Shown here one piece after another: positions 30,464 to 49,161 of a stretch of 49,161 nt of DNA. Below the pieces are notes generated by a model that saw only the letters and a list, made by a program, of their open reading frames with translations, ran no database searches and was not told the DNA's origin. Origin of the DNA: Octopus bimaculoides (taxonomy: Eukaryota). Both the position numbers and the translations under genes were made by a program. The stretch covers positions 65,821,503 through 65,870,663 of the forward strand of contig NC_068982.1 in the NCBI RefSeq assembly GCF_001194135.2, read 5' to 3'. Within the stretch, counting starts at the first letter, position 1. The number at the start of each line of letters is the position of its first letter.

Positions 30464-30765
30464 TATGTGCACATAGAAACCAAGTTAACTCGTTTTTAAT
30501 TGTAGGGTACTTTTGGGGATTCTCCACATTTCACATGTAGTACACACATTTTATTTTGTGCTGGACAATAGATAATGACTGAGAACTGATTTACATATGG
30601 TTAACATGTTGCATCACCAACAAAACTTTAATCAGCACTGTGAAGGTCAAATCCAACACTTGTTCAGTTGGAAAATAGATAGAACTTATGTCATACTTCT
30701 GAGTTTGTTTAGTTGTATATCCAGGAAATCATTTGTCTATTATTTGGTTAATACTATAAAACTGT

Positions 30766-31121
30766 GGAAGCACAATGGCCCAGTGGTTAGGGCAGCGGAC
30801 TCGTGGTCATAGGATCGCGGTTTCGATTCCCAGACCGGGCTTGCGAGTGTTTATTGAGCGAAAACACCTAAAGCTCCATGAGGCTCCGGCAAGGGATGGT
30901 GGCGAATCCTGCTGTACTCTTTCACCACAACTTTCTCTCACTCTTACTTCCTGCTTCTGTTGTGCCTGTGTCACGCTGAATATCCTCGAGCACTACGTTA
31001 AGGGTACACGTCTCTGTGGAGTGCTCAGCCACTTGCACGTTAATTTCATGAGCAGCCTGTTCCGTTGATCGGATCAACTGGAACCCTCGACGTTGTAAGC
31101 AACGGAGTGCCAACAACAACA
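30766..31121 (+). mobile_element. tRNA-derived SINE (family C) with 13-bp TSD
   Basis: Head GCACAATGGCCCAGTGGTTAGGGCAGCGGACTC...GGTTTCGATTCCC and an (AAC)n tail. TSD ACTATAAAACTGT at 30753-65 and 31122-34. Confidence 0.9.
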
Positions 31122-31621
31122 ACTATAAAACTGTAACTAAGAAAGCCATCTTACCAATACCTTAGGGTATTTATATTTAAATTATACCCCCTATTTCTGC
31201 TACTCTTTACTTTGATTATAATGATTATTTCAGATTTTGGCACAAGGCCAGCAATTTTAGCGAGAGGGAATAGTTGATTACATCATCCCCAGTACTTGGC
31301 TGGTACTTATTTTATTGACCCCCAAAAGGATGAAAGGCAAAGTNNNNNNNNNNAAAGCCATGGATTTTAAGATGTTAATTTAACCGAACCCATTGCTTAG
31401 TGGTAAGAAGTCATAAATTTTGGTGTGAGGTTTTTGGTTGATCAAATTAACTCTAGAAACTAACTTATTTTATTGATCCTGACAAAATGAAATGTAAAGT
31501 TGACTTCATTTGTATTGATCTTCACCTTTCATCCTTCTGTGATGAATATGGTAAATTCAAATTTCTGACTTTGTGTACCAGCATAGTAAATCATTATTGT
31601 TGTTGTCATTGTTGTTATTAT

Positions 31622-31661
<40 letters not shown>

Positions 31662-31678
31662 CTTGTTATTATTATTAT

Positions 31679-31875
31679 GGCAGTGAGCTGGCAGAATCGT
31701 TAGCATGCTAGGCAAAATGCTTAGCAGTATTTCATCTGCCACTATAGTAGAAAGGATTATTATTATTATTATTATGGTGGTGAGCTGGCAGAATTGTTAG
31801 CACGCTGGGCGAAATGCTTAATGGTATTTTGTCTGTCAGTAGTTTGTCTGAGTTCAAATTTCAGTAGAAAGGATT
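31679..31875 (+). mobile_element. Two tandem truncated family B SINE heads
   Basis: GGCAGTGAGCTGGCAGAATCGTTAGCATGC and GGTGGTGAGCTGGCAGAATTGTTAGCACGC. Each unit ends in AGTAGAAAGGATT followed by an (ATT)n or (GTT)n tract. Confidence 0.7.
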
Positions 31876-31974
31876 GTTGTTGTTGTTATTCTGGTAAGCA
31901 TTTAAGAACAGGGTTAAGCAGCTGGTGAAACCTAGTTTCACTATTCCACTTCCTTTATGAACATAAAGGGTGCA

Positions 31975-32358
31975 TGTGTGGCTATGTGGTTGAGGTTGCT
32001 TCCCAAATATGTGGTCTAGGGTTCAGTACCACTTTGTGGCACTTCAGCGAGTATCTTCTACTATAGCTTTGGTCTGACCAAAACTTTGTGAGTTGATTTG
32101 GTAGACAGATACTAAAAGAATCCCATTGTACATGTGTGTGTATGTATGTACATACATATGTGTTATATATATATGTGTGTGTGTTAGGGTGTACTCTTGC
32201 CCAGGCATCGCATAATGGTTGTAAATGAGCATCAATTTCATACAAGCAAAGCTGCTTGTGAGGGTTGGTGGCAGGAAGGGCTGGTTGTAGAAAATCTGCC
32301 TCAACAAATTCAGTTGAAACTGCAAGCATGGAATAGTGGATGTTAAATGATGATGATG
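31975..32358 (+). mobile_element. Decayed family A SINE followed by an RTE-like tail ending in (GAT)n
   Basis: Degenerate GTGGCTATGTGGTTG...GGTTCAGTACC head and core, then GGTGGCAGGAAGGGC...GCATGGAA...GATGTTAAATGATGATGA. Confidence 0.65.
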
Positions 32359-33337
32359 ACAGATGGCCACAAATTTGTAAGAAAACGCCATTTTCAATTT
32401 AACTAGCACCAATAGTGTATCACTGGTAGTTATTTTGTTGGTCTTAACAGGATGAAAGGTAAAATCTGTGCAGGGTGAATAGTAATGATAATAGAAGTGG
32501 TATTTTCTTTCTCCAATAATGTATATTGTTTTATTTCCATAATAAACTTTGTATATCAGATGAAAGTATTTTGTCTGCTATGTAAATTGATTTCCATCAT
32601 GATATGGCTAGCAATTTCCTTTCTTAATGCTTTACTCCAAATTATCATAATTTCTTGCTCTGATATATATATTTTTGCCTTTCTTGGCTGACAATGATAA
32701 GTGTTCATCAAAGTATAATGGAGTTGGCAGTGATGGTAAAAAACCAGACCATATACTGTATGGGATCATCTCATTCACTGTTTCCTATTCTGTTCAAATC
32801 CCTCTGGGGGTTGTTGAAATAAGAGTACTTCTCATGATATATATTCAAGTTAATTTGATTATCACTACCCCCACCCCACCACCTTACAGAGTTAGCATTG
32901 TATCTTATAAAGAGATTATGTGCTCATTAGATCTTTGAAAGAAAAAATGTCATTAATAGTCTGTGAACTGAAAGCTAGTTGAATATATTGCCAAAATTGA
33001 AACAGCAGCTTGATATTATTCCAAATTGGTTTCAGTACAAAATAGATGTTCATCAACATTAATTTTGTAATGGTTGTATTTTTTTTTGTTTACAATTGAT
33101 AAACCATTTTTTAAAAAATAAGGCAATTTTTTTCATTTTCTCTATAGTATTCTTTCTTTTTAAAAAAAATTTTGATAAAGGTTGGGGCTTCTGTGGTTGT
33201 ATTGTGATAATTATTGATGGATTTTCAAATTTACCTTGTCCTTCTTTTGCTTCCTAGTTCCATACCTAGTCAGTTAATTATATACCTATCCACAGTTTCC
33301 TTTTTTTTTTTCATTTGTTTGGTCAGACTTAGTTTTC

Positions 33338-33648
33338 TCTACTAGGTTCTGTGTCTAATCTCCTAATTCTGTACTTAACTACATACTTTTCTATCTAATC
33401 CTTTATTCTGTACCTAACTACTTAGTTCTATATTTAAACGCTCAATTCTGTACTTAGCCACTTAGTTCTGTACCTAGTCACTAGGTTCTGTATCTAACCA
33501 CATAGTTCTAGTCATAGCTATATAGTTCTGTACCAAGCCACTTAGTTCTGACCTAACCATTTAAGTTTGTACCTTGTTGCTTACTTCTTTCCATGGTCAC
33601 TACAGTAGTAATTTAGTTCTGTACCTGACCACTTAAGTCTGTATCCTG
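33338..33648. repeat. Degenerate 20-bp minisatellite
   Basis: Units resemble CACTTAGTTCTGTACCTAAC and recur with substitutions. Confidence 0.75.
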
Positions 33649-33851
33649 TCATTTTGTTTTGTAGTAAAAATAAAAAGTAGAAACTGGTGAAGTCTTTTGT
33701 CAACAAAAAGTGACAGTAGAATGTGTAATACTCTGGACTTCTGTCTTTTGTCAGTAAGAGAGTAAAAATGTAGATCTTGTCATTGTTAGGCTGCAAAACT
33801 GTGGATGAGAAAATGAAGAGGAGTGATGCTGAGGGATAAGTGTAGAGAGAG

Positions 33852-34030
33852 AGAGTGGCTGTGTGGCAACAAGTTTGTTTCCCAGCTACATGGTCTTGGG
33901 TTCAGTTACACAGTGTGGTACCCTGGGCAAGTGTTTTCTTCTGTAGCCCTGGGCCAATCAAAGCCTTGTGAGTGGATTTGGTAGACAGGAACTGAAAAAG
34001 GCCTGTTTGTGTGTGTATGTGGTTGCATGC
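33852..34030 (+). mobile_element. Family A SINE, decayed
   Basis: GAGTGGCTGTGTGG...GGGTTCAGTTAC...CCTGGGCAAGTGT...GCCTTGTGAGTGGATTTGGTAGAC. Confidence 0.75.
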
Positions 34031-34290
34031 TTGTATGTCTTTATTGTCACCTTACCTTGATTTCACTTGATAGTTGTAAATGAATGTTACTGTTATGCAA
34101 ATGGTATTGTTCATTTCCAATCTTCCATGAAAACATGTCTAGTTATGGGAAATGTTATGTTACTTAGAAACAGGAGTATGTGTGTGTGTGNNNNNNNNNN
34201 NNNNNNNNNNNNNNNNNNNNNNNNNNNNNNNNNNNNNNNNNNNNNNNNNNNNNNNNNNNNNNNNNNNNNNNNNNNNNNNNNNNNNNNNNN

Positions 34291-34350
34291 AAGGCTTTGG
34301 TCGGCCCGAGGCTGTAGAAGACACTTGCCCAAGGTGCCACACAGTGGGAA
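34291..34350 (-). mobile_element. Family A SINE core fragment, truncated at a Tc1 terminus
   Basis: AAGGCTTTGGTCGGCCCGAGGCTGTAGAAGACACTTGCCCAAGGTGCCACACAGTGGGA. Confidence 0.7.
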
Positions 34351-34353
34351 TGA

Positions 34354-34787
34354 GGGGGTTGGACAAAAATAATGGAAACAACTAGCATCATAATTTTGAA
34401 ATATCTATAAAAACGTCAAAAGCTTGTTTATTTTTATGTTTTTTGATTTATTATTAGTGTTGCTTAAAATGTTTTGCTAAAATTGCTGTTTCTTTTCAGA
34501 TATCATCAGAAAAAGGTAATTAATATTCATTAAAATGACAGATCTATTGAACATTCAAAGAGGTCAAATTGTTGGTGCTCATATGGCAGGTGCTAGCATA
34601 ACGAAAACAGACAAAATGTTAGGTGTATCAAGAAATACTGTCTCGAAAGTAATGACAGCCTTTGAGAAAGAGGGAAAAACCTCGTTGAAACAAGACTCCG
34701 GAAGAAAACCAAAACTTTCAGATAGGGACTGTCAGACTCTTATGTTAATTGTTTGAAAGGATCACAAAAGTACAGCTCCTAAGATTA
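34354..34787 (+). mobile_element. Tc1-type transposon 5' fragment (TIR and paired-like HTH)
   Basis: TIR-like GGGGTTGGACAAAAATAATGGAAACAC. ORF 34535-34756 contains QRGQIVGAHMAGASITKT...LGVSRNTVSKVMTAF...SGRKPKLS. Confidence 0.8.
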
Positions 34788-35164
34788 TGTGTCTTGCTAT
34801 AGAGGAGGTACATGGTTATCCAGTGAGAGAGAGAGAGAGAGAGGTACAGAAAGAGACCAGAAACAAGTGTGCTGGTGTAAAGGTGATACTTGGTTACCTA
34901 GTCAGAAGAAAAACAAGATAAGGAGAGAATGAGTGATCTAAGGGAAAGTGAGAGAGAGGGAGTGAGAGAGTGATCAAAGGGAAAGAAAGAGAGAGGGAGA
35001 GGAAGACTTAGGAAACAACAAAAGTGTGTAAGAGAGAGCAGAAGAGAGATGGTGTAGTGCTAGGGTTTACTCACAAGTAACAAAAATATGAGCATAGAAC
35101 CTGGTTAGAAAAATAGGGAGTGGGTGGTGGGTTGTGTGGGGAGCAGTGATACAGTGAGGGCAAG

Positions 35165-36170
35165 AAAGGGGATTGGAAAACAATTACAATGTATGAGGAC
35201 ATGTGTAAGCTCGCAAGAAATGAAGCCAGTATGCTCTGATGGATGTGTAATGTCAGTGTGCATACTCGACAGAGTGTAAGTACCTTGAGAGAAAAGTTGG
35301 ACCTAAGAAGCATCAGCTGTGGTGTGCAAGAGAGACGATTGCGCTAGTATGGTCATGTGGCGAGAATGGATGAGGATAGCTGTGTGAAAAAGTGCCACAC
35401 CCTAGCGGCTGAGGGAAATTGTGGAAGAGGTAGACCCAGGAAGACCTGGGATGAGGTGGTGAAGCACGACCTTCGAACATTAGGCCTCACCGAGGCAATG
35501 ACTTGTGACCGAGACCTTTGGAAATATGCTNNNNNNNNNNNNNNNNNNNNNNNNNNNNNNNNNNNNNNNNNNNNNNNNNNNNNNNNNNNNNNNNNNNNNN
35601 NNNNNNNNNNNNNNNNNNNNNNNNNNNNNNNNNNNNNNNNNNNNNNNNNNNNNNNNNNNNNNNNNNNNNNNNNNNNNNNNNNNNNNNNNNNNNNNNNNNN
35701 NNNNNNNNNNNNNNNNNNNNNNNNNNNNNNNNNNNNNNNNNNNNNNNNNNNNNNNNNNNNNNNNNNNNNNNNNNNNNNNNNNNNNNNNNNNNNNNNNNNN
35801 NNNNNNNNNNNNNNNNNNNNNNNNNNNNNNNNNNNNNNNNNNNNNNNNNNNNNNNNNNNNNNNCATGGAAAAACATTCAAGCGAGGTCATTGCCAGTGCC
35901 GCTGGACTGGCTCCTGTGTAGGTGGCACATAAAGAACACCATTTGAGCGTGGCCGTTGCCAGTACCGCCTGACTGACCCTCGTGCCGGTGGCACATAAAA
36001 GCACCCACTACACTCTCAGAGTGGTTGGCGTTAGGAAGGGCATCCAGCTGTAGAAACTCTGCCAGATCAGATCGGAGCTTGGTGTAGCCATCTGGTTCAC
36101 CAGTCCTCAGTTAAATCGTCCAACCCATGCTAGCATGGAAAGCAGATGTTAAACGATTATGATGATGATG
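35165..36170 (+). mobile_element. RTE-clade LINE 3' end (ORF C-terminus plus 3' UTR), gap inside
   Basis: LREKLDLRSI...RRLR*YGHVARMDEDSCVKK...GRGRPRKTWDEVVKHDL, followed by a 3' UTR ending in (GAT)n. Confidence 0.85.
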
Positions 36171-36289
36171 AGGAGGAGGAGGAGGAAATGTGTGGAAGAG
36201 AAAGGAGTTGCAATTTGATTTCTTAGGGCGGAAAGTGTGTTGTTACATGTGGGTGTGATACAACACTTCTAGCACTCAGTTTCTTGGAA

Positions 36290-37153
36290 GGGTCTTCCCT
36301 AAGACCTCATATTGCCAAACATCTTGGTCTACCGTCATTTCTACCATGAGCCCCAACATCCTAAGATCAGTCCTCATCACTTCATCCCATTTCTTCCTGG
36401 GTCTCCCTTTTCCACAGGCACCATCCACTTTCAGTGGCAGCTACTTCTGTATACAGCTGTCTTTACTCATATGCATCACTTGTCCAAACCAATGCAGTCT
36501 CCTCTCCTGCATGCCACATCAATCCCTCTTATGCCGAACTTTTCTCTCAACACAGTTGTATTTTGTCGATCATGCACACTGATGTTGCAAATCTAATGGA
36601 GCATACTACCTTCATTCCTCTCCAACCTACGCGTCATCAGCAGTCAGAGCCCATGTCTCACAACCATGTAACGTAGCTGTTCTCACACAAGCATCATACA
36701 ACCTACCTTTCACTCTGAGAGAGTTTTACTGTCAACAGAGGTAGTAGTTCTCTGAACTTCCTCCACTCTATTCTTATTCTAGAAACAATACTTTCAGAGC
36801 ATCCACTGCTGTTACTAATTTGGTCACCTACATAGCAGAAATTATCTACTACCTCAAGAGAGCCTCCTAGGCATTTGAGAGAGTTGAAGTCCCTCTTAGT
36901 ACTTACTGTTCCTGCGCACCTGCCACACGAAAGTGACCTTATCTCATAATCTTCCTATGATTCCACTGCATCTCTTATGCATCCATAGATTACACTTGGT
37001 GCAGCGAATGGAATTACATCCCACTCTTTTCCTACATATTGAACAGAGCCATTTGCCAACCAGAATGAGTGTCTTATTTCCTTTCTCGATAACAACTATG
37101 GATGCAAGCTGAGCTGTAGAACCTTTGCTATCGAGAGAAGCCTCAAGATACAT
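36290..37153 (-). mobile_element. RTE-clade LINE fragment with PHD-like C4HC3 finger, decayed
   Basis: GKWLCSICRKRVGCNSIRCTKCNLWMHKRC...FVCGRC, followed by VVDNFCYIGDQIS...WRKFRELLPLLT...KGRLYDACVRT...HGCETWAL. Confidence 0.85.
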
Positions 37154-38081
37154 CAGGGAAAGACTTGTTAGAAGAGGACAGAGTAGTGTGAATCATCTAA
37201 TCGGAAAACATGTGGCAAATTTTCCCCAGACACAAATCACAGCGTATCAGTAAATGCTACAGCAAAAACCTCTTTCCAACCGGAAACTACAGGTTATGAG
37301 ACTGATGCATGCACTTGCAAGAAACCGAGGGTTCTGTTGCCTGCTGCTACTGAAAAAGTAAGATATAAAGAATTTGAGAACAAGGTATGTAAATCTCTAT
37401 ATAAAATGACAGGATCTACAATGGAGAAACTAGGGAAGTTAGCAAGCTGAAGACAGGAATGAAATTATTTGGAGTAAAAAATCATGATCCCTGATTGGCA
37501 AAAGGGAAGAGTGGACCAAGCAGGAGGAACAGAAAATGCAGTTGAGGATGCAAAAGAACAACTTAAGAAAGTGATGAAAATTTGTTTTGCATCTATGGTA
37601 AGAGATCCCTTACTAGAAAAAAAAAGCATAGGTTAGTGACAGGAAAGGCATCCAACTGAAAACAATGCTTCAACAATATATCTAAGCCATGCTAGTATAG
37701 GAAAATGAACATTAAAAACAAATGAGCAAAGAAAAACTTCCTTTCAAGAATAATATTACAATCTCAATCAACTTATGAAACTGCTGTTACTACATCCTTA
37801 GTTCTTTTAGCAGCCATTCTCTTCTAACTTTCAATAGTTCAATAATTATGTCACAAAGCAGCAAAGCCTTTACATAATTTGCCACCACCTATTCCTCTGT
37901 GGATCAACATAACCTTTTGTTGTGGACAGTTGAATTGTAAAGTTTGCAAATGCTGGCATTTGAAAGAACACAAAGAATAACAAGCCACAACACAAAACAT
38001 TTTATTACTATTGGCAGAATAATGTGTTAAAACTGCATTGTCAACATATGTCTGATGTATTCCGACTATTGTACAAAACGT

Positions 38082-38460
38082 GGAGGCGCAATGGCCCAGT
38101 GGTTAGGCCAGCGGACTCGCGGTCTTAGGAACGCGGTTTCGATTCCCAGACTGGGCGTTGTGAGTGTTTATTGAGCGAAAACACCCAAAGTTCCACAAGG
38201 CTCTGGCAGGGGTTGGTGGCGAACCCTGCTGTACTCTTTCACCACAACTTTCTCTCACTCTTACTTCCTGTTTCTGTTGTGCCTGTAATTCAAAGGGCCA
38301 GCCTTGTCATACTCTGTCACACTGAATCTCCCTGAAAACTACATTAAAGGTACACGTGTCTGTGGAGTGCTCAGCCGCTTGCACGTTAATTTCACAAGCA
38401 GGCTGTTCCGCTGATTGGATCAACTGGAGCCCTCATCGTTGTTACCGACGAAGTGCCAAC
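38082..38460 (+). mobile_element. tRNA-derived SINE (family C) with TSD
   Basis: Homologous to 30766-31121. TSD ATTGTACAAAAC at 38068-79 and 38465-76. Confidence 0.9.
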
Positions 38461-39264
38461 TACCATTGTACAAAACAAAAAAAAAACATTTTTCTTTGCC
38501 TCTATCTGTGTGCTTACTGCAATACTGTTTCTGTGCTGCATCCATAGAAATGAATACTGCACCTTATATTGAATTTGACAAATGTAAGGTGTCAATGTAG
38601 CTGAGGTTGTTTAGGTTCACACTACAGCATTGCGGCTACTCTGATGTTAACACATTCACTCAGTAACCACATGGTCCTGGGTTCTATATTACTGCGTGGA
38701 ACCTTTGGCAAACATCTTCTACCATCTTTCTTAGGTCGACAAGTACTTTGTGGGTTTAATTTCAAAGGGAAAAACTATTTAGAAGTCTGTCACATGCACG
38801 CACACACACACACAGACGTGTGTGTGTCTTTGTGTGTAAAATGTACAAGAACAAGTCAGACATAGGCTCTACAAGTTACATTGCAGGCTGATCATCTAGG
38901 CATGCAGTAACTTCAAATAAGGTAGAAGAAACTTTTTGATCCTCTCACATGGGACTTTTTCAGTACATGTGACACAAAATAATACACACTATAAAGCACA
39001 AGACTACAAAGTTGGCTTGTTTTCTCTGTTACTATTATGTACCTTCTACTGCAGCACACTATCAGATATCTCCTTCTTCCCCACTCACTTCTGACACCTC
39101 TGCCCCACTAATTCCTACCCAGCTCCACTATTCTCACCCACTTTTCTAAAATGTGAATAATCATGTCTCTTCTACAAGAAACTTGTTCTGCTCCAGCAGC
39201 TTTTCTCTCACACTTTGCCTCTCTCTCTCTCTCTACTCTTTATTCTTCTAGCATAAAGGCTCCC

Positions 39265-39500
39265 CACCTCCTTGGGGTTCATTGTCTGGCAAGCTGCATG
39301 GTGACCTCAGTAGTGCCGGTGGCATAAAAAAAAGGTGCTCAGTACACACTGTAAAGTGGTTGGCATTAGGAATGGTATCCAGCTGTGAAAATCATGCCAA
39401 AGCAGATAGTGGAGCACATTGCAGTTCTTAAGCACTTCAGATCTATCCTGATCGACACATGCCTGAATGGAACATGGATGTTAAATGATGATGATAATAA
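39265..39500 (+). mobile_element. Decayed RTE/SINE-type 3' tail
   Basis: GTGCCGGTGGCATAAAAAA...GTGGTTGGCATTAGGAA...ATCCAGCTGT...CATGGATGTTAAATGATGATGA resembles the tails at 18285 and 35864. Confidence 0.6.
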
Positions 39501-39949
39501 TATTGATGGTGATGTAGACCATGAGAAATGATTGCAAGATAATGATAATGATACTTGTTGAGATATATTGATTTGGAAATCTCAAGTAAAGTACAAGTCA
39601 ACTGGTTTTGTTACATTGTAAGCGAATGAAGTTGTGGGTATGATATTATGTTGAAATTTGATGAATTAAATGAGTGTATGAACTGTTTAATTGACTTGTT
39701 AACTTTATTCTGTTGTGGTAAAATGGAAAATGGATGAATATTTGGTTTAGAAATAGTTTCTACAGAATTTGTTTAGGATTTCTTCTATAACATTTCTGTT
39801 TTCAAAATGTAGGGTTTTGATGGGTGTTAGTGGTTGTTGCTGTTGTTTGGCACCTAGTCAGACTTGATTGAGCAAGTAAAGTATATTTCAGGGAATCATT
39901 CTCTTATCTTAATAACAACCAATACATCTTTCATAAAGACAAATCTACT

Positions 39950-40800
39950 GGAGACCCATTGTTCACCAATGGACTCTCAACCTCAAGAAATTTTACAAAT
40001 GCCATATTATTGCACTTGTCATCAATAGAAATTTTGGATGTGCTTGCCTGTTGTCTCCATGTTTCTTATTCCTTGGATTTAAGGCAGATTGTTTCATCAT
40101 GACATACTATAGGAGCTTTTTTTACCCATATTCTATGGGTCCCCCTCGTTCTTTATGAACTTCAGTGTACCCCAAAGTTTGGCTTTGTCTCCCATACGCT
40201 TCTTTCTTACCTACTTGCCATCATCTCCAACAATGTCCATTCTTATACAGAAAATACAGTCCATCATTCCTCTTGGAGCTTAGCATAATCCATATGCAAC
40301 CTAAGTGTCTCATGTCAGACTGTCCTGATTCCATGAACATAGACCGTAAAAACAGTCTGCAATGGGATCATGTCAGTATTGTCTCACTAAGACAGTCACA
40401 TAAAAAATAATAATAAAGTACTCCAAACATGAACAACATGCAATTAGACCCCTCAAAATCACTATAAATTTTAGGCCTTACCATTATTGGAGGATATCTC
40501 CTCACAATCTCATCTCCTCAACAGCAATGATTGCATCACAAAACCTGACCTTTCTCTTCAGGGTCAGAAAATACTTCACACCCTTTGCCTAGGAAATACC
40601 CTTTCACCCTTGCAAGTAAGAGATCTACAGTGGAATGCTGCTCCTACGTATTGGACAATGTTGCTGTTACACTCAGACATTCTAGACTGCAATAGAAAAA
40701 TGGTCATATAACTAGTTAGCATGAAACAACTTTCTAATGCACTCCAACTTCTGGTCCACAGTTGTACTATCCCTATACTGTTTTTCTTTTCCTTGAGGAC
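39950..40800 (+). mobile_element. Highly decayed CR1/L2-like LINE RT fragment
   Basis: Residual motifs read across frameshifts: PQSLALSP (GVPQGSVLSP-like), ILGLTI, and QVR..VECCSYV (VRPxLEYCS-like). Confidence 0.45.
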
Positions 40801-41215
40801 ACCTGTATAGAGAAGTGTGCTTAATGTGGTTGGAACTTGCAGAAGAGGGAGACCCAGGAAAACTATGATGAAGGCTGACCTCAGTTTCCTTCATGCTAAT
40901 TTAATTTAATTTAATATCAACTTTAGTAGCCTATGGCTTATTATGCAACAGATCAAGATAAGCTTATTGGTATTATGGAAAAAAAAAGCCAAGTGCAGTT
41001 TTTTTCTCCTTTTTTTGTAATTTATCCAAGTTGAGTAAAATTGGAAAATATTAAGATCTTGATGAAATTCTTTTAAGAAATAAATAGCAGCTTGGTTTGT
41101 GTCAAACAACAAATCGATCTTATTAAAAAAATTTTTTTTGTTAGATCTTTTGAAATAATTTGTTTAGTTGCATTTTGCTATTAACCAATTATTGACTTTG
41201 TTTCTTCTTTTGCAG

Positions 41216-41296
41216 ATACCAACCAGTTTTCAAATGGCGTAGTACTTCTGCATCCTGCTAAAATTGTCTTGAACAGCCACTTAAACATCTGTCAAA
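41216..41296 (+). other. 5' UTR part of the CPES coding exon, with an in-frame mini-uORF (ATG GCG TAG, 41234-41242)
   Basis: Strong acceptor TTTGTTTCTTCTTTTGCAG| at 41215. An in-frame stop lies upstream of ATG 41297, which has a good context (CAAAATGG). Confidence 0.7.
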
Positions 41297-42064
41297 ATGG
41301 TTTCATTACAAGCACTGCGCAAAGACAAAAATGGATTATATTTATTCAGTTTTATTATCTTTGTTTATTTTGGAATTATGGATATAATTTTGTACATCAC
41401 ACTTCAAAAGTCTGTTCTAAATGAGAAGAAAAACGGCAGTTTCTCCCCTTTCCGGCCACTTACAGTGAAACTGTTAATGACAGATCCTGTTGATCACTAC
41501 ATTCTCTCTCCTGTTGCTGAATACTTTGATGAAATCACGCAATTCAGTCATGTCTTTTACTTTATTACCCCAAATATGATTAGTTTTTCCCACGTTTTCA
41601 TTGCTATTATTGCTGGCAAGCTGATATCTTCGGACTCTCTCTACAACCGTCGAATGGGTGTTCTTATCTACCAGTTTCGTTGCTTCCTTGATGCCTTTGA
41701 TGGTGTTGTCTATAGAGCACATGTTGGTGCTGGCCATATCTACAAATCTCACCGTTCATCGTTAGGTTACCTGGTGGATTCTGTCTGTGATATAAGCGGT
41801 GGTACTGCTTTGTGTATAGGAATGGCTGTCTATGTCTGTAGATACCCACCTTTGAAAAATCAGCAGGATATATTACCATGGACAAAACCCGTTGAAAACG
41901 GGACTGGAAATACTAAAAAAAATGGTCATGTAAGCAGTTGGATGGCCTTTTGGAGAACTTTCAGTTTTGGCATGCTGCTTGCAATGTCTGCATTTTCATG
42001 GGACAAAACTGTTGAGAGGTTCTCAGGTATTCTTCAAGTGCCTATTTCAGATGCTCAGGACAAA
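41297..42064 (+). CDS. CPES: Ceramide phosphoethanolamine synthase (CPES)-like CDP-alcohol phosphotransferase, first coding exon (256 aa); downstream exon(s) not located
   Basis: N-terminal TM helix; TVKLLMTDPVDHYI; ITPNMISFSH (the TPNxxS/T motif); catalytic motif D132-x2-DG-x2-YR...G157-x3-D161-x3-D165; further TM helices. Phase-0 donor AAA|GTAAGT at 42064/65. The 315-aa ORF in the track reads through into the intron. Confidence 0.9.
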
Positions 42065-42288
42065 GTAAGTACAATTTTACATTCTCTTTTACATTGTTGT
42101 CCATATGTAACTACATCTCTACAAGTCTTTATCTTTTTCTATCTCTATCTTGCTGCATCTCTGCTTGTCTTTATCTCACTACCACAGCCCAATCTTTATC
42201 TCATAACATTTTATATACCATTTTCTCAATACATTTTGTTTTAAAAAATTGTACATCAAGAATTAATAGTACTGGTGTCCTTTGCAAG

Positions 42289-42321
<33 letters not shown>

Positions 42322-42377
42322 CTCTCTTTTATCTCTCTCTCTTTTCTCTCTCTCTCTTTTCTCTCTCTCTTTCTCTG

Positions 42378-42409
<32 letters not shown>

Positions 42410-42924
42410 TTCTGAACTTCTGTGATTGATGTCTGTTGGATTAACAAAGATAGAGTAAGAATTTTTTACTATCACATTCAAGAAAAATGTTTAACTTTTT
42501 TGCTTTTGTGGCAAGTTTTGTTTAATTTCTGGATAAACAGAGTGGTCATGGTAAATGTATCTTTGTCTGTAGGTTGATTTATTTTAACTGAATAAATTGA
42601 TAAGAAACAGTTACTGAGAATCAAGTTGTTTTATTCAGCTGTAACATTCAACTTCAGTATACAAAGCACATATCCATTTTTATATCAAATGACTGGCTAC
42701 CAACCTTCAACTAAAGTATGCCATAATGCTCCTAAATTAGAAGTTGTGAAAAATTATGTCAGAGGTATTTAACTTGAGTTCATCAAAAATTTTGTGATGT
42801 GAGGTTATTAACTAATGTGACAATTACATTTTAGTGTGGGGTATATATTTTAGTGTGGGTGCTGTGGATGGAGAGAATTTTGAGTTGGATCTTGGAAAGT
42901 ACATGAAATGGAAGGTGGCACAAT

Positions 42925-44200
42925 ATTTTGTTATCTAGGAGACATGTTGAATGGAGAAGGTGGATCAGGCATGGCTATGGTGGCTAAAGTGAGATGCACA
43001 TGAAAATTCCATGAACCAAGCAGTGTGCTACTGAGGAGGAAAGTGTTAATGACACTGAAGGGAACGGTATATACTGCATGTATAAGAAGTGCTAAGCTTT
43101 CTTGGAATAAGACATAGGTAACAAATACAGGGCAGTAGATAAGGCTACAAAGAGCAGAATGAGAATGGTTCAATGGATGAGTGGAAATATCATTGAGTAA
43201 GAGGAAGACAGACAATGAATTGCAGAGTATGGTGGGAGTAAAGCCACTGATGAATGTTGTGAAAAGAAATTGGATGAGATGGCTGGATCATATGCTGAGG
43301 AAGAATGTGTAACGACCGTGCGACCAGGAGATGGTGACGAAGGAATGGCTCCTTTAGTGCATCGCATGGTTGGCACAAATATAAAAAACAAAGGACGTTA
43401 GTAGAAAGTCCAGACACAAAGATGGGAAATACCAGTTCATAGCTAAGGTACACAGTAGTTGAAGTGCTGTACCAAGAGGTTGTGGCGTTGAAAGCAGAGC
43501 CGAAGTAAGACACATGTCGTGTAAGAAGTTGAGGCTTTAACGCTGTTGTTGGTTACTTGGTACAGGAGTTCTTGCAGGTTGAATTTGCTGTTAACCTTGG
43601 TGAAGCATTTCACAAACAGCGTGAAGAAAGTTATGTTAGCGTTGCTGGTTTAGTGTGTACTTAGAGAAGTTGGTGTAGACACTGGCGACAAAGAAGCTTG
43701 TAGTAAACAGTTAATTGAACGAAGTGTTGGATCTCCAGTGAAGCGGAGTCATGTTGTTGCTGGAAATGGCTGGTGCTCTGTGGTCAGCGGCTAGACCTCA
43801 GAAGGTCTAAAGCCGAGACAAACTTTAGCGCAGACAAGCTAGCTATTTATGAGAAATAATCGGCTCAAACAGGGGTTCAGAAAACTGTCGAACGCGACCT
43901 TATCTGAAGGCGGTGATTGGTTGGGTTGCACCCTGGCACGAGACAGAATAAGAAAGAAAAATACGCCAATACCAACCAATCAGAGTGGTGGACATAAGGT
44001 CCAAAGAAGTGGCTGAAGGCTAGCTGTTATCTGCTACGTCTGCTTTCATATATATATAATAGAGAGAGAGAGAGCAGCTTCGCTACAAATGCAAGTGACT
44101 GGGAGGAGTGATAGAAATGAATGTAAAAGGAAGTAGAAGAAAAGAAAGACTAAGATTACAGGGTTAAAGATGATGGAGAAGGAAATGAGGGCAAGGGGGT
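42925..44200 (+). mobile_element. Old RTE-clade LINE fragment split by a solo LTR
   Basis: YLGDMLNGEGGSG... before 43307 ends at HMLRKN and resumes after 44088 (ASDWE..EMNVKGSR), corresponding to the GHVMRM..RGRP region. Confidence 0.6.
43308..44087. mobile_element. Solo LTR (780 bp), likely Ty3/gypsy type
   Basis: Termini TGTAAC...CTACA with a 4-bp TSD AATG (43304-07 and 44088-91). CpGs are retained. A TATA-like CATAAATAG lies on the minus strand. Confidence 0.8.
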
Positions 44201-44329
44201 TGGTGTGGAGGCATGTATAAGATAGGGCAAAATAGAGAAGACCGTCATGTGGTCCACATAGTTAACCCATTATTGAACAGGGAAATTATTTTAAAATGCT
44301 TGTTGTTATTGTATGTACTTCGCTACATT

Positions 44330-46200
44330 CAACCAATGTAGTTGCAGATGAAAATGCAGAGAGATAAAGTAACACATCCATAATCCTGTGGGTATAGTAC
44401 TATGGTGAGTGAATATTTGCTAATTAGCTGGATAGCCTCTTTTATGTGATCTAGAATGTTTTTAGTTTTGTAATAGCAGCACTGTCTTGAATATGTGCAC
44501 AGTGCTCCAATGTGGAGTGCATTCTAGTTTTTGGAAAGGTCAGTCCCTGGCCTTTCAAAAGTTCTTTTGTGATTTTGAGACATAGAATTTTATACCATTT
44601 TATTGATGTTATTTAGTGCAAGACTTTTTCTCTCTGATGTTTTTAATGATTATATCATGAAGAAGTCTTTGTACATAGGAATGCAAGTCTGGTGTGAAGT
44701 GTTTATCATGCATGTATATGGCATCTGTATGTGGTAGGTTAAGGTTGAAGGGTGGTGTTATCTGAGTAGGAATATGTGGATAAAACAGAAAAAAAGTTAG
44801 TGTATAGAAAGGAAGTGTGTGGGAAGATAGTTAAGCAGTGAGATACAAACTGATGTGATGAGGTTAGCTGATAAAAAACTTCTGATCGAAGATATAAGAG
44901 AGATAGATGATTTAACATTAACTCGAATTTGCTATCTTAACTAGGTTGTTCACACACTATACATGGTTGATGGCTTTACTCACATAAAGGGAAACAACAT
45001 TACTTCCCTTGAAGCTGGCTGTGGGAGTAAGTTTCTTATAGATCTGCCTGTACAAAACTGTGCAGAGGGTTACTGAGAGAAGAACGAAAGGGAATGAAAG
45101 TAGTGATTGGTGATAACTGTTTCCATCACCTTTGAAATGTTGGAAGTGAGGTTCATAGAGTGGCGTCTGGCAGGGATCTGAAAGGTTCTTATGAATGACA
45201 TTTGGTTGTATGTTTCCATAGACTAAATCCCTTTACAGAAAGCTTGAAGAGTTTGATAAGAAAAGGAGCTAACTCTGGAGTGCACAGTTTGAGAGTAATG
45301 GAAGGGACACAAACAGGGCTGGTCACTTAGTTGTATTGGAGATATCAGAGATTTACTGGCGAAGAGTGCAGTTTTATTGTCCGTGTGTGTGTGCAGGTTC
45401 CATGTGTGGTGACTATCTGTAGGAGTATTACAAAATTGTCTTGGTTGAAACATAGTGGGAGGAGAATAATAAAAATTCTGTTGGCTACAATTCAAAAGAA
45501 AAGAGGGTTGGTTGACTACTTTTTGTATGAAAGTATCCTTTCTTAATGGTTATTTTGTAAGCATTTCAGTGTTGGGCGAACATTCCTATGTTGTTTTGTA
45601 GCCTCAAGTGAGTGCTGATTAAGCGGATCTGTTCCAGTTGTAACCATTATGTCTTCTTTTCAAGCATAATATATCTAAGATTACCTTTGTACTTTTATTT
45701 TGTTATACGTTAAACATATTTAAGAAAAATATTGGGAAGGAAAAAGCAAAATGTTTGTCCATTGTTGAATGAAGTGCATAATGCCCTTAATCTCTTGATT
45801 TGGAAACAGCTATTGGACAAACTAGATTTGTTGGCATTAGACTGTTGTCATTGTCATCAAATACTTTTGTTATGGTTATGGAGCCATGGTCAGTCCATAC
45901 TTTTTGGTTTAGAGGAAGGGGCAATGTCCAAGGCCTTCACAAGCCCTTTTAGAAAGGTGAAATCGATGTCAATAATCTATTAATGCTCATCGTGGATGTA
46001 TGTTACTCAACACATGTAAGGAAAGGTATGAGCAGGGAGGGGATTCCAGGAGGCTGATGTTCTGTGAAAGAAGGACTGGTCATTGTAATTAGTGCAGTAC
46101 CTGGGTAGGACTGGACATAAGGGTGATGGGAGGAGGAGAGACAAGAAAGATGGGAATGCATTAGTGGAGGAAGTATGAGCAGAGACAGTTGATAACTATA
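44330..46200 (-). mobile_element. Highly decayed CR1/L2-like LINE (EN-RT linker and RT)
   Basis: Minus-strand remnants NLTSNISKVMETVI, SLYVSKAINHV (LDISKAFD-like) and STLEHCAHI (PxLEYCSHI-like). Boundaries are approximate. Confidence 0.55.
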
Positions 46201-47072
46201 TTCCATAGACCCAGTGTTTTAGATACATAATGTTGCCACAGCTTGCGAACACTAATATGCAGGTAATTATATTCTGAAGTGCAGTATAACAGTCTGCCTG
46301 CCTGCCTTTTTTTCTCTATTTTTTCTCCCATCCTTATTTATCAAGTTCAGGTAGTTGTTCAGTCTTAAGTCAGCTCTTAATCCTTGTGTCTGGTATTCCA
46401 GTCATGACTAGCTTATCTTTTTTTTTTTTCAGACTTAATATATCTAGGTTCACATTATTCAGTGTGACCTATCTTTTTGAAGATAGTAAAGTGTGCTTTG
46501 GGGGAGATTTGTCTGCTAGACCTAACAGGTCTCATGACTAGATGCTTTCTTGTTTGGTTCAAAATTCCTCAACAATCCCTATTGAAGTGGTTTTTAACCT
46601 ATGACATAGTATCCTCTGGTGTTGTTGCAAGTTGCCTAATTAGATGCCAGTCATCTTTCAATATCAAAATTACATTAAACAAACGTCTTTCATTATAACT
46701 GTATATAGTTATTATTTACAATAATATACCTGACATCAAAATTGATGTCATAAATGTATTGAAAATAAACTGAAAATGGTATTTAATAAATGTGTTGACA
46801 TAACATACATTCCATTTATTTGATACAGACTTGTATAGTAAAAATAATTAAACTTTTATTGAAAACATTTTGAAGGATTTGATAGAAAAAAGTGAACTAA
46901 ATATAAGGGAGAGTTTTATATAAATTGTTTTGATATTTTTTGAGGTTAAAACAATGAAAATCTCTTTATTTAATGATTGAAAATTGTTCTAAATATTTTA
47001 TTAAATTATTGGTGAGTCTGTACCATGGAAAATGACAGCGATTAACATGTATATTAAAAATTTATTCACAAA

Positions 47073-47228
47073 GGCACAGGAGTGGCTGTGTGGTAAGTAG
47101 CTTGCTTACCAACCACATGGTTCTGGGTTCAGTCCCACTGCATGGCATCTTCTACTATAGCCTCGGGCTGACCAAAGCCTTGTGAGTGGATTTGATAGAC
47201 GGAAACTGAAAGAAGCCTGTCGTATATG

Positions 47229-47259
<31 letters not shown>

Positions 47260-47454
47260 CTGTGTTTGTCCCCCTAGCATTGCTTGACAACCGATGCTGG
47301 CATGTTTATGTCCCCGTCACTTAGCGGTTCAGCAAAAGAGACTGATAGAATAAGTACTAGGCTTATAAAGAATAAGTCCCGGGGTCGATTTGCTTAACTA
47401 AAGGCAGTGCTCCAGCATGGCCGCAGTCAAATGACTGAAACAAGTAAATGAGTA
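47073..47454 (+). mobile_element. Near full-length family A tRNA-derived SINE
   Basis: A box TGGCTGTGTGG, B box GGTTCAGTCCC, internal microsatellite, and 3' part ending GACTGAAACAAGTAAA. It lacks the TGGGCAAGTGTCT core segment seen in other copies. Confidence 0.9.
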
Positions 47455-48066
47455 TGCATGATTTATGGCAAGGAATACTGAAAAAGGCTTTGGAGTTTAC
47501 TTACCACAATTTAGTTACTTTGATACATTTGTGAATGATATTGCTGACAAAATTCCCTGACAAATTTCATCCCTAAAAGTTGAAATCATGGCCCACTTTA
47601 TGAGTTTTCTTACAGAACCACATGAACACACTTTTCACCCACTCTACCCTAGAAACCGAACTACAACCCTTCTTCTAACTGCATCTTTCTTTTCCTCACA
47701 TTTTCTCTTCATAAATTACCATTGTTTTCCAATCTTCTTTCTTGCTCTCACTGCCTTGCTCACAGTATCCTACCCCCTGCAACACCCACACTCTATTTTT
47801 CTACCCAGGTTCTATGCTCAGATTATTGTTACCTGTGAATATACCCTAGCACTACACCATCTCTCTTCTACTCTCTCTTACACTTTTGCTGTTTCCTACT
47901 CTTTCTCTCTCTCTCTCTCTCTCTCTCCCTATGATCACTCATTACACACACACACACATATATATATATATTTGAGATGGTAATTTTTTTTCTTGCCAAA
48001 TAAACACAAACATTATATATTCATTCTTCATTTATTATTGTTCTTGTCTTTATTTCCCATTGTCTG

Positions 48067-48100
48067 TAATTCTTTCATCACACACCTGTGACCTCTTCAG
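48067..48100 (-). ncRNA. Minimal hammerhead ribozyme motif (PLE pseudo-LTR type)
   Basis: CTGAAGA-G-GTCAC(AGGTGT)GTGAT-GAAA-GAATT-A. The core is intact and stem I is degraded. Confidence 0.6.
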
Positions 48101-48186
48101 TGACTTTTCCACCCCATGTGTCTCTTCCTGCTCTGTTTAGTACATTCTCACAATTTTACATCAGGAATCTTGCAAAACAAATTCAT

Positions 48187-48258
<72 letters not shown>

Positions 48259-48267
48259 TGTATTTCG

Positions 48268-48790
48268 GGATGGTCATGGCTGTGTTCTTGTGGACAAGGT
48301 ATTTAGAGGCCATGGGTTTGGTATAATAGGAGTGAAGGATCTGGACCTTATTGTTCTTGATTTCTAACCAGAGTTCCATGTCTAAAACTGGTAGCCTATA
48401 GTTGGGGTGCTTGTTAGAGTAGTCTGTTGTTACTTTGATACTCTGGTGGATGTAGTTAGCTATTTGTGGGATGCTCTCCATAGTGTTAGCTCCTAGATCA
48501 ACATTGTCTTGTAGGGGTGCTTTGGCTACTATCTTGATATCATCCATATAGCGGGAGTACATGGTTAGGGTTATGGAGCTCTCTGCTAATTTCTCTTTGA
48601 GTCTCCTAACCCACAATACCATAAATAAGTTAGCCACATCACCAGCGATACTGACACCAATGGCTGCACCTTCCTCTTGGGCGTATATCTTGTTACTAAA
48701 CTTAAATATGTGGCCCTTGAGTGTGATCTTGGTACTCTCACCCACTATGTGCGAGGAGATGGGGCTGAGGAGAGGGTCATTATGCTACTG
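48268..48790 (-). mobile_element. Penelope-like retroelement reverse transcriptase fragment
   Basis: FKFSNKIYAQEEGAAIGVSIAGDVANLFM, YSRYMDD, DYSNKHPNYRLPVLDMELW and YYTKPMAS. It is truncated on both sides, and the ORF tail runs into (TG)n. Confidence 0.88.
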
Positions 48791-48906
48791 AGAATAATCA
48801 CACACACACACACTAACACAGATGCAGGCGCATATAAGGATACACATCATAGAAGAACAGAATGGAATAAGCTGAGCAAGAGCACACACAAAGACAGAAA
48901 GTGTCA

Positions 48907-48940
48907 CTGAGGCGGTCACAGATGTGTGACGAAAGATTTC
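48907..48940 (+). ncRNA. Minimal hammerhead ribozyme motif, A9>C variant
   Basis: CTGAGGC-G-GTCAC(AGATGT)GTGAC-GAAA-GATTT-C. Stem II is perfect, the cleavage triplet is UUC, and stem I is GUCA/UGGU. Confidence 0.55.
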
Positions 48941-49115
48941 TGGTCAATGGACATTAGTTTGAATAAAAACAGTAATAAATAAGTGAAGAACGAATATATA
49001 GTGCATGTGTTTATTAAGCAAAAAAAAAAAAAAGAAATGACCACCCCGTAAAACAACAATATCTGTTTCAACTTATGACTTCACATCAGGAATCTTGCAA
49101 CACAAATTCATAAAC

Positions 49116-49161
<46 letters not shown>

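Follow-up and report, generated by a model that had tools for sequence, protein, structure and literature searches.

We found that a 49,161-nucleotide stretch of Octopus bimaculoides DNA, hereafter called the window, contains an exon that very probably opens the coding region of a functional octopod gene belonging to the ceramide phosphoethanolamine synthase (CPES) family, with membership indicated by motif and homology. The gene is a newly recognised member of this already known family, and its product is likely to be a ceramide head-group transferase, that is, an enzyme with ceramide as its acceptor. We further propose, tentatively and with slightly less than even confidence, that the octopod enzyme uses a phosphonate donor and contributes to the formation of ceramide 2-aminoethylphosphonate (CAEP). 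The reading as a whole, in which a CPES-family ceramide enzyme would accept both CDP-ethanolamine and CMP-2-aminoethylphosphonate (CMP-AEP), is put forward with the same reserve. The hypothesis that an octopod CPES acts as a CAEP synthase is plausible and apparently unpublished.

The exon had been proposed in a first-pass annotation made from the letters alone, and its open reading frame, start codon and GTAAGT donor all proved intact, with coordinates that are exact (Table 1). Three in-frame stops lie within the 81 nt upstream of the ATG (translation of 41186-41320). The acceptor AG is putative, being read from the sequence rather than from a same-species transcript, and suggests an exon start at 41216 and a 5' untranslated portion of 81 nt. 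The orthologous locus of Argonauta hians aligns over window positions 41191-42070 (87.6% across 880 nt), so that conservation begins 24 nt upstream of the acceptor and stops at the donor; the rest of 30001-49161 gave no alignment to the Argonauta locus apart from short matches of about 66-83% at 35.4-38.0 kb, which fall at several places and on both strands of that locus and are likely to be dispersed repeats. Argonauta has the identical ...GATAAA/GTAAGT exon-donor junction, and in a spliced cuttlefish-like transcript (L002/P0003) the next exon is joined exactly after the homologous ...QDK. The exon accounts for no more than the N-terminal ~77% of the protein. Searches by tblastn with P0001 and P0003 as queries found neither the C-terminal ~75 residues nor the next coding exon in the window. 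Intron 1 contains a (CT)64 microsatellite at 42289-42413 (TRF) and, on the reverse strand at 48161-48745, a reverse-transcriptase fragment (weak Pfam RVT_1 match).

Table 1. Features of the octopod CPES-A locus in the window
Feature	Positions	Strand	Evidence
Pyrimidine tract and putative AG acceptor (3' splice site), AG = 41214-41215	41195..41215	+	sequence ctttgtttcttcttttgcag
5' untranslated portion of the CPES exon, 81 nt (putative)	41216..41296	+	translation; Argonauta alignment 87.6%
Octopod CPES-A first coding exon, ATG start, 256 codons, residues 1-256 of about 331	41297..42064	+	ORF, 89% Argonauta identity, dN/dS, family profile
Predicted N-terminal TM helix, residues ~14-37, ahead of CDP-AP core	41336..41407	+	hydropathy; AlphaFold helix 11-38 in orthologue
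Predicted catalytic CDP-alcohol phosphotransferase signature, residues 132-165	41690..41791	+	regex on translation; invariant residues; PMC9550178
GTAAGT splice donor, phase 0, directly after Lys256 (codon 256)	42065..42070	+	sequence; Argonauta junction; spliced transcript L002
Intron 1, incomplete, >7.1 kb	42071..49161	+	no C-terminal match by tblastn

Three stretches of the exon product are hydrophobic (residues 12-38, 86-112 and 163-181), with a hydropathy maximum of 2.35 over the first of these. A regular-expression search of the translation located D132-AF-DG-VV-YR140-x16-G157-YLV-D161-SVC-D165, i.e., DAFDGVVYR-x16-GYLVDSVCD, a match to the CPES motif as published, D(X)2DG(X)2(A/Y)R(X)8-16G(X)3D(X)3D (PMC9550178), long spacer included, with Tyr replacing the canonical Ala; D132, D135, G136, R140, G157, D161, and D165 are invariant across 54 homologues. 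An AlphaFold model of the Argonauta orthologue, which is 89% identical, reached a pLDDT of 86.6 and a pTM of 0.83, and its 10 best PDB matches in Foldseek were all CDP-alcohol phosphotransferases (PIPS, AF2299, IPCT-DIPPS, and CHPT1), with a probability of 1.00 for 9 of the 10, yet with weak E values (0.009-0.3) and TM scores of 0.3-0.4. The predicted fold is thus that of a CDP-alcohol phosphotransferase. The generic Pfam model PF01066 (CDP-OH_P_transf) matched residues 90-176 with 15.4 bits (E = 0.026), under its 22-bit gathering threshold, which we attribute to a CPES branch too divergent for this model; full-length P0001 and P0006 gave no PF01066 match at E <= 0.01, and a precomputed match is present in some homologues. 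A PDB sequence search with the exon product returned only chance matches (olivetolic acid cyclase, E 0.4-0.75). The N terminus is net positive (3 K/R versus 1 D/E), residues 111-119 form an RR-rich turn, and an N-terminal helix behind a positive N terminus is compatible with an active site on the lumenal side.

The closest relative was the Argonauta hians protein P0001 (89% identity, E = 2.5e-153), followed by bivalve and gastropod "CPES-like" proteins with 39-47% identity, the bivalve ones named "ceramide phosphoethanolamine synthase-like" at 1e-63. Among arthropods, a tick CPES aligned with 93% of the exon product at 36% identity (E = 1e-34) and a lepidopteran protein named CPES, moth P0364, at 32% identity (E = 1e-33); the latter, taken from cluster look-ups, stood in for the fly, mosquito, and silk-moth enzymes as the arthropod anchor of the comparison. 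A profile of the CPES family matched 325 representative clusters at E <= 1e-10 and the lepidopteran cluster P0229 at E = 3.7e-62, and a profile search with the arthropod-type branch (A2) gave at least 34 proteins, whose sole source name (jgi "phosphatidylserine synthase") is uninformative. Blocks of the putative lumenal loops, SPF.PL.VKLLMTDP..HY and FITPNMIS, are common to octopod and arthropod CPES. Judged by sequence comparison, the similarity to CPES proteins is not a chance one. Homologues occur in molluscs, scleractinian corals, hydrozoans, a brachiopod, a bryozoan, a rotifer, ticks, mites, a copepod, a dragonfly, a moth, and a nematomorph, and those of the tick, mite, copepod, and moth are named CPES by their sources. 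The first-pass annotation had described a multi-TM CDP-alcohol phosphotransferase of the CPES type with a patchy distribution: motif, homology, and predicted fold agree with the former, the distribution is indeed patchy and broader than had been stated, and the sequence does not group with a non-CPES CDP-alcohol phosphotransferase family, so that the CPES assignment stands.

Cephalopods carry a second CPES paralogue, copy B, which is intronless, while the octopod exon belongs to the intron-containing copy A. The two are each other's closest relatives with 98% bootstrap support, and on this ground an ancient "CAEP paralogue" common to all CAEP-making phyla was rejected: the duplication is cephalopod specific, and there is thus no pan-animal copy of this kind. 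At four sites that are conserved elsewhere, paralogue B carries derived residues (Y68W, G121A, R128H, and Y149F/Q), and copy A is nearer to other molluscs, which makes copy A, as far as the sequences tell, the more conservative member of the pair. In Argonauta, copy A is annotated as a "hypothetical predicted protein" and copy B is named CPES-like. The earlier proposal, that this gene could be the final enzyme of CAEP synthesis, is supported as regards its CPES type; given the second paralogue, the gene is just one of two cephalopod candidates.

Insect CPES enzymes (Drosophila CPES/CG4585, Aedes, and Bombyx) have the same divergent signature, long spacer, and loop blocks as the octopod protein, in which an extra N-terminal TM helix like theirs is predicted, and the Bombyx and mosquito enzymes have been shown to work in flies (PMC9550178). 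In contrast to them, the octopod protein, which is known from sequence, has Tyr and not Ala before the motif Arg; it is also shorter than moth CPES (about 331 versus 372 aa), and its host makes CAEP and N-methyl-CAEP besides CPE and encodes PEP mutase. The Kennedy-pathway enzymes CHPT1, CEPT1, and EPT1/SELENOI belong to the same superfamily and would have in common with the octopod protein the four-Asp di-metal site, the chemistry in which an alcohol attacks and CMP leaves, and the motif Arg, which in xlCHPT1 binds the CDP diphosphate (PMC10182977). CHPT1 was among the 10 best structural matches of the orthologue model, and yet the sequence similarity of these enzymes is very low; moreover, they act on diacylglycerol and not ceramide, have 10 TMs, and carry a proposed extra catalytic Glu/His pair in GExxDHxxD where the octopod protein reads GYLVDSVCD. 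Sphingomyelin synthases (SMS1/2) and SMSr yield the same product class, ceramide with a phospho head group, CPE included, but are unrelated in fold and chemistry, being of the lipid phosphate phosphatase type with a glycerophospholipid rather than a nucleotide as head-group donor.

Among bacteria, the "CDP-OH" (Burkholderiales) type is the most abundant ppm gene-neighborhood family in RefSeq and includes two PntC cytidylyltransferases along with two genes for phospholipid biosynthesis (PMC8942020), which counts in favor of the CAEP proposal. These Burkholderiales_CDP-OH phosphonolipid clusters, with Ppm, Ppd, AEPT, and the two PntC, follow the same proposed logic, from AEP through a CMP conjugate to transfer onto a lipid alcohol by an enzyme of the CDP-alcohol phosphotransferase type (PMC8942020, PMC6697681); their products are uncharacterised and their enzymes are not close relatives of the octopod CPES. 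When the CPES profile was run against 185,579 prokaryotic genomes (one per species), it gave two weak, generic CDP-alcohol phosphotransferase matches, in an Acidimicrobiia MAG and a Woesearchaeota MAG, and no PEP mutase gene (ppm) lay within 10 kb of either, so that bacterial gene clusters lend the CPES family no support.

CAEP is a major membrane sphingolipid in molluscs and cnidarians (PMC9174665, PMC8708635, coral lipidome review), and cephalopods are counted among the animals that contain it (PMC9174665). In Octopus vulgaris arm muscle, 29 CAEP, 6 N-methyl-CAEP, and 7 CPE species were recorded, and ceramides 16:1;O2/16:0 and 19:3;O2/16:0 were among the leading species of CAEP and CPE alike (PMC12335516), in line with the first-pass annotation, which had placed CAEP in cephalopods. 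That annotation also knew of no characterised cephalopod enzyme for the final assembly step, and in the literature we searched no paper names a CAEP synthase and no enzyme is named for this step. The genomes of Octopus vulgaris (P0106, on a 59-Mb contig) and Argonauta hians (P0102, on a 36-Mb contig) each have a PEP mutase gene, both proteins being 81-82% identical to the crystallised Mytilus enzyme, and corals have PEP mutase together with a CPES homologue (82-member cluster); these observations give the CAEP proposal circumstantial support. PEP mutase was also seen in polyneopteran insects, Collembola, and barnacles. The presence of PEP mutase in the same genomes means that the whole phosphonolipid pathway may be host encoded and not dietary or microbial in origin. 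Coral CAEP amounts can be comparable to those of PC and PE (coral lipidome review). The proposal presupposes an AEP-accepting cytidylyltransferase that supplies CMP-AEP in the compartment of the enzyme, and it is a complication that the gate between phosphate and phosphonate can sit at the cytidylyltransferase step, as the ethanolamine-phosphate cytidylyltransferase (ECT) of T. brucei rejects AEP (PMC2784872).

By analogy with solved CDP-alcohol phosphotransferases, we speculate that D132, D135, D161, and D165 would hold two divalent metals, that the CMP-linked donor of the head group would be bound at its diphosphate-type bridge by R140 and these metals, and that the C1 hydroxyl of ceramide would then attack the distal phosphorus while CMP departs. 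For the fly enzyme an active site on the lumenal side of the Golgi has been reported, and the extra N-terminal membrane helix predicted in the octopod enzyme would orient its active site in the same way. An ethanolamine-type head group would thereby be put on ceramide, with CDP-ethanolamine giving CPE and CMP-AEP giving CAEP, and the supply of donors would set the product mix. In a wider form of this proposal, also somewhat short of an even chance in our estimate, the octopod gene and its orthologues in other molluscs, brachiopods, bryozoans, rotifers, and cnidarians would encode the missing animal CAEP synthase, a lumenal enzyme using CMP-AEP instead of or besides CDP-ethanolamine, and in cephalopods the old copy B and the parental copy A may divide the synthesis of CPE, CAEP, and N-methyl-CAEP between them.

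The residue before the motif Arg is Tyr in the octopod product and likewise in nearly all spiralian and cnidarian members, and a change from Ala to Tyr, Phe, or His at this position, beside the Arg expected to bind the diphosphate, splits Spiralia and Cnidaria from the arthropods. As a clue to the donor, this substitution is only suggestive. It tracks not only lipid type but also phylogeny (Spiralia and Cnidaria versus Ecdysozoa), and it switches within a few clades; it is therefore not diagnostic and was rejected as proof of phosphonate use. No sequence feature separating a phosphonate from a phosphate donor was found in the octopod protein, and we know of no sequence determinant for this choice.

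The most serious competitor of the dual-donor proposal, a realistic if somewhat doubtful one, is that the octopod gene encodes a plain CPE synthase using CDP-ethanolamine only, with CAEP arising through SMS/SMSr-type head-group transfer from a glycerophosphonolipid or through paralogue B. CPE synthesis of the SMSr type from PE is established in animals and may be counted in its favor. The product exists both in octopus muscle (7 species, PMC12335516) and in mussels (19 species, PMC8708635), and since octopus contains ordinary CPE, a CPE-only role would be enough to explain the gene; furthermore, the CPES members said to have been tested, from fly, mosquito, and silk moth, all make CPE (PMC9550178), and the four derived sites of paralogue B could mark a changed specificity in that copy and not in copy A. 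Corals fit less easily, as the coral lipidome review includes CAEP and is silent on CPE and sphingomyelin, yet the coral CPES homologue is well represented. In mussels, moreover, diacyl phosphonolipids, the glycerophosphonolipid donors of an SMS-type route, are found only in trace amounts (PMC8708635), which weakens a lipid-donor route to CAEP, and no SMS-family enzyme was reported to make CAEP in the literature searched.

It is improbable that the protein is merely CPES-like and, as a CDP-alcohol phosphotransferase, takes a different acceptor or makes a different product, such as PE, its phosphonate analogue, or another Golgi head-group lipid. To our knowledge, no member of the spiralian and cnidarian CPES branch has been assayed, and beyond the CPES family the matches are generic and weak, as the PF01066 score and the 14-22 bits of archaeal and bacterial inositol-phosphate lipid synthases illustrate. 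Nevertheless, the homology to arthropod CPES proteins extends without a break over the full length, the CPES-specific long spacer and the loop blocks are common to the octopod and arthropod proteins, and the Glu/His pair of eukaryotic choline/ethanolamine phosphotransferases is absent (G-Y-L-V-D-S versus G-E-x-x-D-H in xlCHPT1, PMC10182977). That the exon is a decaying, nonfunctional copy, with the other paralogue as the working gene, is scarcely credible: while the names given to the two Argonauta copies and the position of the remainder of the gene beyond the window would allow it, the open reading frame and both splice signals are intact, all invariant family residues are kept, copy A is spliced in a decapodiform transcript, and its closeness to other molluscs likewise speaks against decay. 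The dN/dS of 0.12 between the exon and Argonauta (dS 0.44) indicates purifying selection, and the pseudogene reading was rejected on this basis.

Our findings turn the CPES family into a short and concrete candidate list for the CAEP synthase, comprising a pair of genes in cephalopods and one or more in each coral, hydrozoan, and brachiopod species sampled. If the octopod enzyme makes CPE only, the gene is simply one more orthologue of a lipid synthase already known. If it does use a phosphonate donor, this would bring a phosphonate into the donor range of CDP-alcohol phosphotransferases in an animal, complete an animal-encoded phosphonolipid pathway beginning with PEP mutase, and account for the building of hydrolysis-resistant membranes in marine invertebrates. 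Knock-outs and probes would then provide a genetic handle on the function of CAEP in corals, bivalves, and the nervous tissue of cephalopods.

In the protein encoded by the exon under study, residues 12-38 form a strongly hydrophobic helix at the N terminus, and there are further membrane segments. The protein carries the motif D132-AF-DG-VV-YR140-(16 residues)-G157-YLV-D161-SVC-D165, the version of the CDP-alcohol phosphotransferase signature that marks ceramide phosphoethanolamine synthase (CPES) and that work on the fly enzyme writes as D(X)2DG(X)2(A/Y)R(X)8-16G(X)3D(X)3D (PMC9550178). Identity to the exon product is 89% for a 331-aa protein of Argonauta hians, about 83% for cuttlefish-like proteins, 39-47% for bivalve and gastropod proteins that go by ceramide phosphoethanolamine synthase(-like) in their sources, 36% for tick CPES, and 32% (E = 1e-33) for a moth protein named CPES; lepidopteran and mosquito CPES can replace the fly enzyme (PMC9550178). 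Pfam PF01066 scores the exon product at 15.4 bits, below its threshold of 22, and archaeal and bacterial inositol-phosphate lipid synthases give weak matches. The homology at family level is overwhelming, whereas generic models scarcely detect the protein. AlphaFold modeled the Argonauta orthologue with confidence (pLDDT 86.6, pTM 0.83), and the ten best PDB neighbors of the model are all CDP-alcohol phosphotransferases, with weak scores (E 0.009-0.3, TM 0.3-0.4). The first-pass annotation had assigned the exon to a CPES-type CDP-alcohol phosphotransferase, and the motif, the homology to tick, moth, and mollusc CPES, and the PDB neighbors of the model all bear this out, so that the window gene is very probably a CPES-family member. 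The gene is new and its family is known; relatives are already automatically annotated as "ceramide phosphoethanolamine synthase-like," and the Argonauta orthologue is annotated only as "hypothetical predicted protein."

The exon coordinates read from the sequence proved exact, because the ORF and its donor, the conservation with Argonauta, a shared junction, and the splice point of a decapodiform transcript all agree. Three in-frame stops lie within 81 nt upstream of the start ATG, and the pyrimidine tract and AG acceptor suggest that the exon starts at 41216, with a short 5' UTR before the ATG. In an alignment of 30001-49161 with L001, the orthologous Argonauta hians locus, 41191-42070 is 87.6% identical at the nucleotide level, the exon/intron junction (...AAA/GTAAGT) is common to both species, and in the spliced decapodiform transcript L002 (encoding P0003) the homologous ...QDK is followed at once by the next exon. 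Comparison with Argonauta shows purifying selection on the exon (dN/dS = 0.12 at dS = 0.44). The exon is only part of the gene: about 75 C-terminal residues of the protein (RQTDALHLTSTW...REKVRI in Argonauta) match nothing in the window, and intron 1 therefore exceeds 7.1 kb in Octopus bimaculoides, versus about 3.75 kb in Argonauta. The exon belongs to a selected, spliced gene encoding a CPES-family CDP-alcohol phosphotransferase that keeps all metal-binding Asp residues and the diphosphate-binding Arg.

Features located in the window, with strand and basis
Feature	Position	Strand	Basis or remark
256-codon ORF, coding exon	41297-42064	+	ATG start, ends at donor
GTAAGT canonical splice donor	42065-42070	+	directly 3' of ORF
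Pyrimidine tract and AG acceptor	AG at 41214-41215	+	sequence
Reverse-transcriptase zinc-binding fragment (zf-RVT)	989-1702	-	Pfam, E = 2e-5
118-aa ORF (MNKFLIKKRKVAEDG...LQRHFNTRHGNF)	12353-12709	+	
Mariner/Mos1 transposase HTH fragment	27464-27817	-	Pfam, E = 1e-11
Weak RVT_1 fragment, in intron 1	48161-48745	-	Pfam
(CT)64 microsatellite, in intron 1	42289-42413		about 225 nt into the intron
CT dinucleotide array	47899-47927		
AC dinucleotide array	48189-48257		
TA dinucleotide array	49129-49161		
N runs (assembly gaps)	about 3.3 kb, 6.7-7.0, 13.9-14.4, 18.7-18.9, 21.8-22.3, 35.5-35.9 kb		X-runs in ORF translations

The surroundings of the exon are repeat-rich eukaryotic sequence interrupted by gaps, and no second recognizable host gene was found in the window. 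The two reverse-transcriptase fragments and the stretch at 26717-27817, all on the minus strand, are transposable-element debris; that stretch consists of the mariner/Mos1 fragment and a second ORF just downstream of it. The sole other matches to L001 within 30001-49161 lie at 35432-37966, where 50-220-nt segments match multiple places in L001 on both strands at 66-83% identity, and these are probably dispersed repeats common to octopods, not conserved regulatory sequence. Short features near the N runs may be missing because the assembly is a scaffolded draft. The 118-aa ORF has no Pfam match at E <= 0.01, and it may resemble the N terminus of domesticated or hAT-transposase-like proteins.

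A family profile built from 54 homologues and searched among 1.84 billion representatives retrieved 579 representative clusters at E <= 1e-3, of which 325 pass E <= 1e-10. Their members include scleractinian corals (Oculina, Pocillopora), the hydrozoan Hydractinia, the brachiopod Lingula, the bryozoan Watersipora, the bdelloid rotifer Adineta, bivalves, gastropods, ticks, a spider mite, the copepod Tigriopus, the dragonfly Ladona, the moth Anticarsia, and the nematomorph Gordionus. The patchy distribution asserted for CPES earlier is real and, reaching from corals to a nematomorph, wider than was claimed. Tyr139 (41711-41713) replaces the canonical Ala of the "AR" dipeptide of CDP-alcohol phosphotransferases. 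In the family alignment and neighbor-joining tree, the nematomorph and the named arthropods have Ala before the motif Arg, and almost all spiralian and cnidarian members have Tyr, Phe, or His there, with a few switches either way. This residue adjoins the bridging phosphates of the donor, since the motif Arg of xlCHPT1 binds the CDP diphosphate (PMC10182977). We set aside Ala versus Tyr/Phe/His as a marker of donor type because the split also tracks animal phylogeny. To our knowledge, there is no sequence determinant that tells a phosphonate from a phosphate donor.

Cephalopods have two CPES paralogues. Copy A comprises the window gene, Argonauta P0001, and the cuttlefish-like P0002, P0003, and P0059; P0004-P0007, with P0006 as the Argonauta protein, make up copy B, whose identity to the window product is 58%. 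The two are sister groups with 98% bootstrap, the same value as for the enclosing mollusc clade, and each contains octopod and decapodiform sub-branches, so the duplication is cephalopod-specific and predates the octopus/squid split. The coding sequence of Argonauta copy A is split over at least three exons (L001:10001-15718), whereas copy B of this species lies on another chromosome-scale contig (BAAFZT010000013.1; L003:10001-11020) as one uninterrupted ORF of 1020 nt. For this reason copy B appears to be an old retrogene of A that has been kept in octopods and decapodiforms. Counting only sites with at least 80% conservation across 40 other mollusc sequences, copy A carries one derived change, a conservative one, and copy B carries four (Y68W, G121A, R128H, Y149F/Q); identity to other molluscs is 2-4 points higher for A. 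The window gene, as the more conservative copy, is the parental one and has most likely retained the ancestral molluscan activity.

Protein searches with a Mytilus PEP mutase sequence, identical to PDB 1M1B, found orthologues on chromosome-scale contigs of Octopus vulgaris and Argonauta hians (81-82% identity), so that cephalopods themselves encode the enzyme that forms the C-P bond. Animal orthologues are widespread, spanning 75-92% identity to the Mytilus enzyme, and also occur in bivalves, gastropods, a chiton, corals, hydrozoans, sponges, rotifers, and Lingula. PEP mutase was seen, too, in a barnacle, Collembola, and polyneopteran insects (locusts, cockroach, termite, stick insects, katydid). 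Its presence in sponges, rotifers, Lingula, and these arthropods suggests that host-encoded phosphonate synthesis is much broader than implied by the literature on ceramide 2-aminoethylphosphonate (CAEP), the C-P analogue of ceramide phosphoethanolamine (CPE).

The first-pass annotation proposed that the window gene could be the final enzyme of animal CAEP synthesis, using CMP-activated 2-aminoethylphosphonate (CMP-AEP) and ceramide. Its premise that cephalopods make CAEP is sound, as Octopus vulgaris arm muscle contains 29 CAEP species, together with 6 of N-methyl-CAEP, 7 of CPE, and 14 of sphingomyelin, and ceramides 16:1;O2/16:0 and 19:3;O2/16:0 rank among the main species of CAEP and CPE alike (PMC12335516). 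Because octopus contains CPE, the conventional function, CPE synthesis, is enough to explain the gene. For corals, where a CPES homologue and PEP mutase are both present, a lipidome review gives CAEP as the sphingolipid class, with no mention of CPE or sphingomyelin, which are thus unreported, not proven absent (PMC10301201). Mussels have CAEP along with its methylated forms and CPE, and lipid-to-lipid head-group transfer is a less attractive route to CAEP because their diacyl phosphonolipids are present only in traces (PMC8708635). Bacteria activate AEP as CMP-AEP (PMC6697681), and the commonest bacterial ppm neighborhoods are labeled "CDP-OH" and hold two PntC cytidylyltransferases together with two genes for phospholipid biosynthesis (PMC8942020); our scan of prokaryotic genomes for CPES-like genes beside ppm gave nothing useful. 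The cytidylyltransferase step can strictly separate phosphate from phosphonate, as T. brucei ECT rejects AEP (PMC2784872), and CAEP synthesis by the window enzyme would have to involve entry of CMP-AEP into the Golgi lumen. Within the literature searched, no CAEP synthase is named and no CPES-CAEP link is drawn, in line with the earlier remark that no characterized cephalopod enzyme was known for this step.

By analogy with solved relatives, D132, D135, D161, and D165 would hold two divalent metals, R140 would bind the bridge to CMP, and the acceptor hydroxyl would attack the distal phosphorus with CMP as the leaving group. The extra N-terminal helix, the charge distribution, and reports on the fly enzyme suggest an active site towards the Golgi lumen with ceramide as the acceptor, and CMP-AEP may, more speculatively, be among the donors. 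We consider ceramide head-group transfer by the window enzyme likely, and its contribution to CAEP a tentative proposal that falls a little short of probable. Because the duplication is cephalopod-specific, the simplest version of this proposal would be an ancestral spiralian/cnidarian enzyme that takes both donors, with donor supply setting the product ratio, and copies A and B may since have split the work.

A role in CAEP synthesis is a sensible extension that is apparently unpublished within the literature searched and unlikely to surprise a lipid biochemist. The idea reduces a gap that has stood for decades to a few genes, for which the assay is clear.
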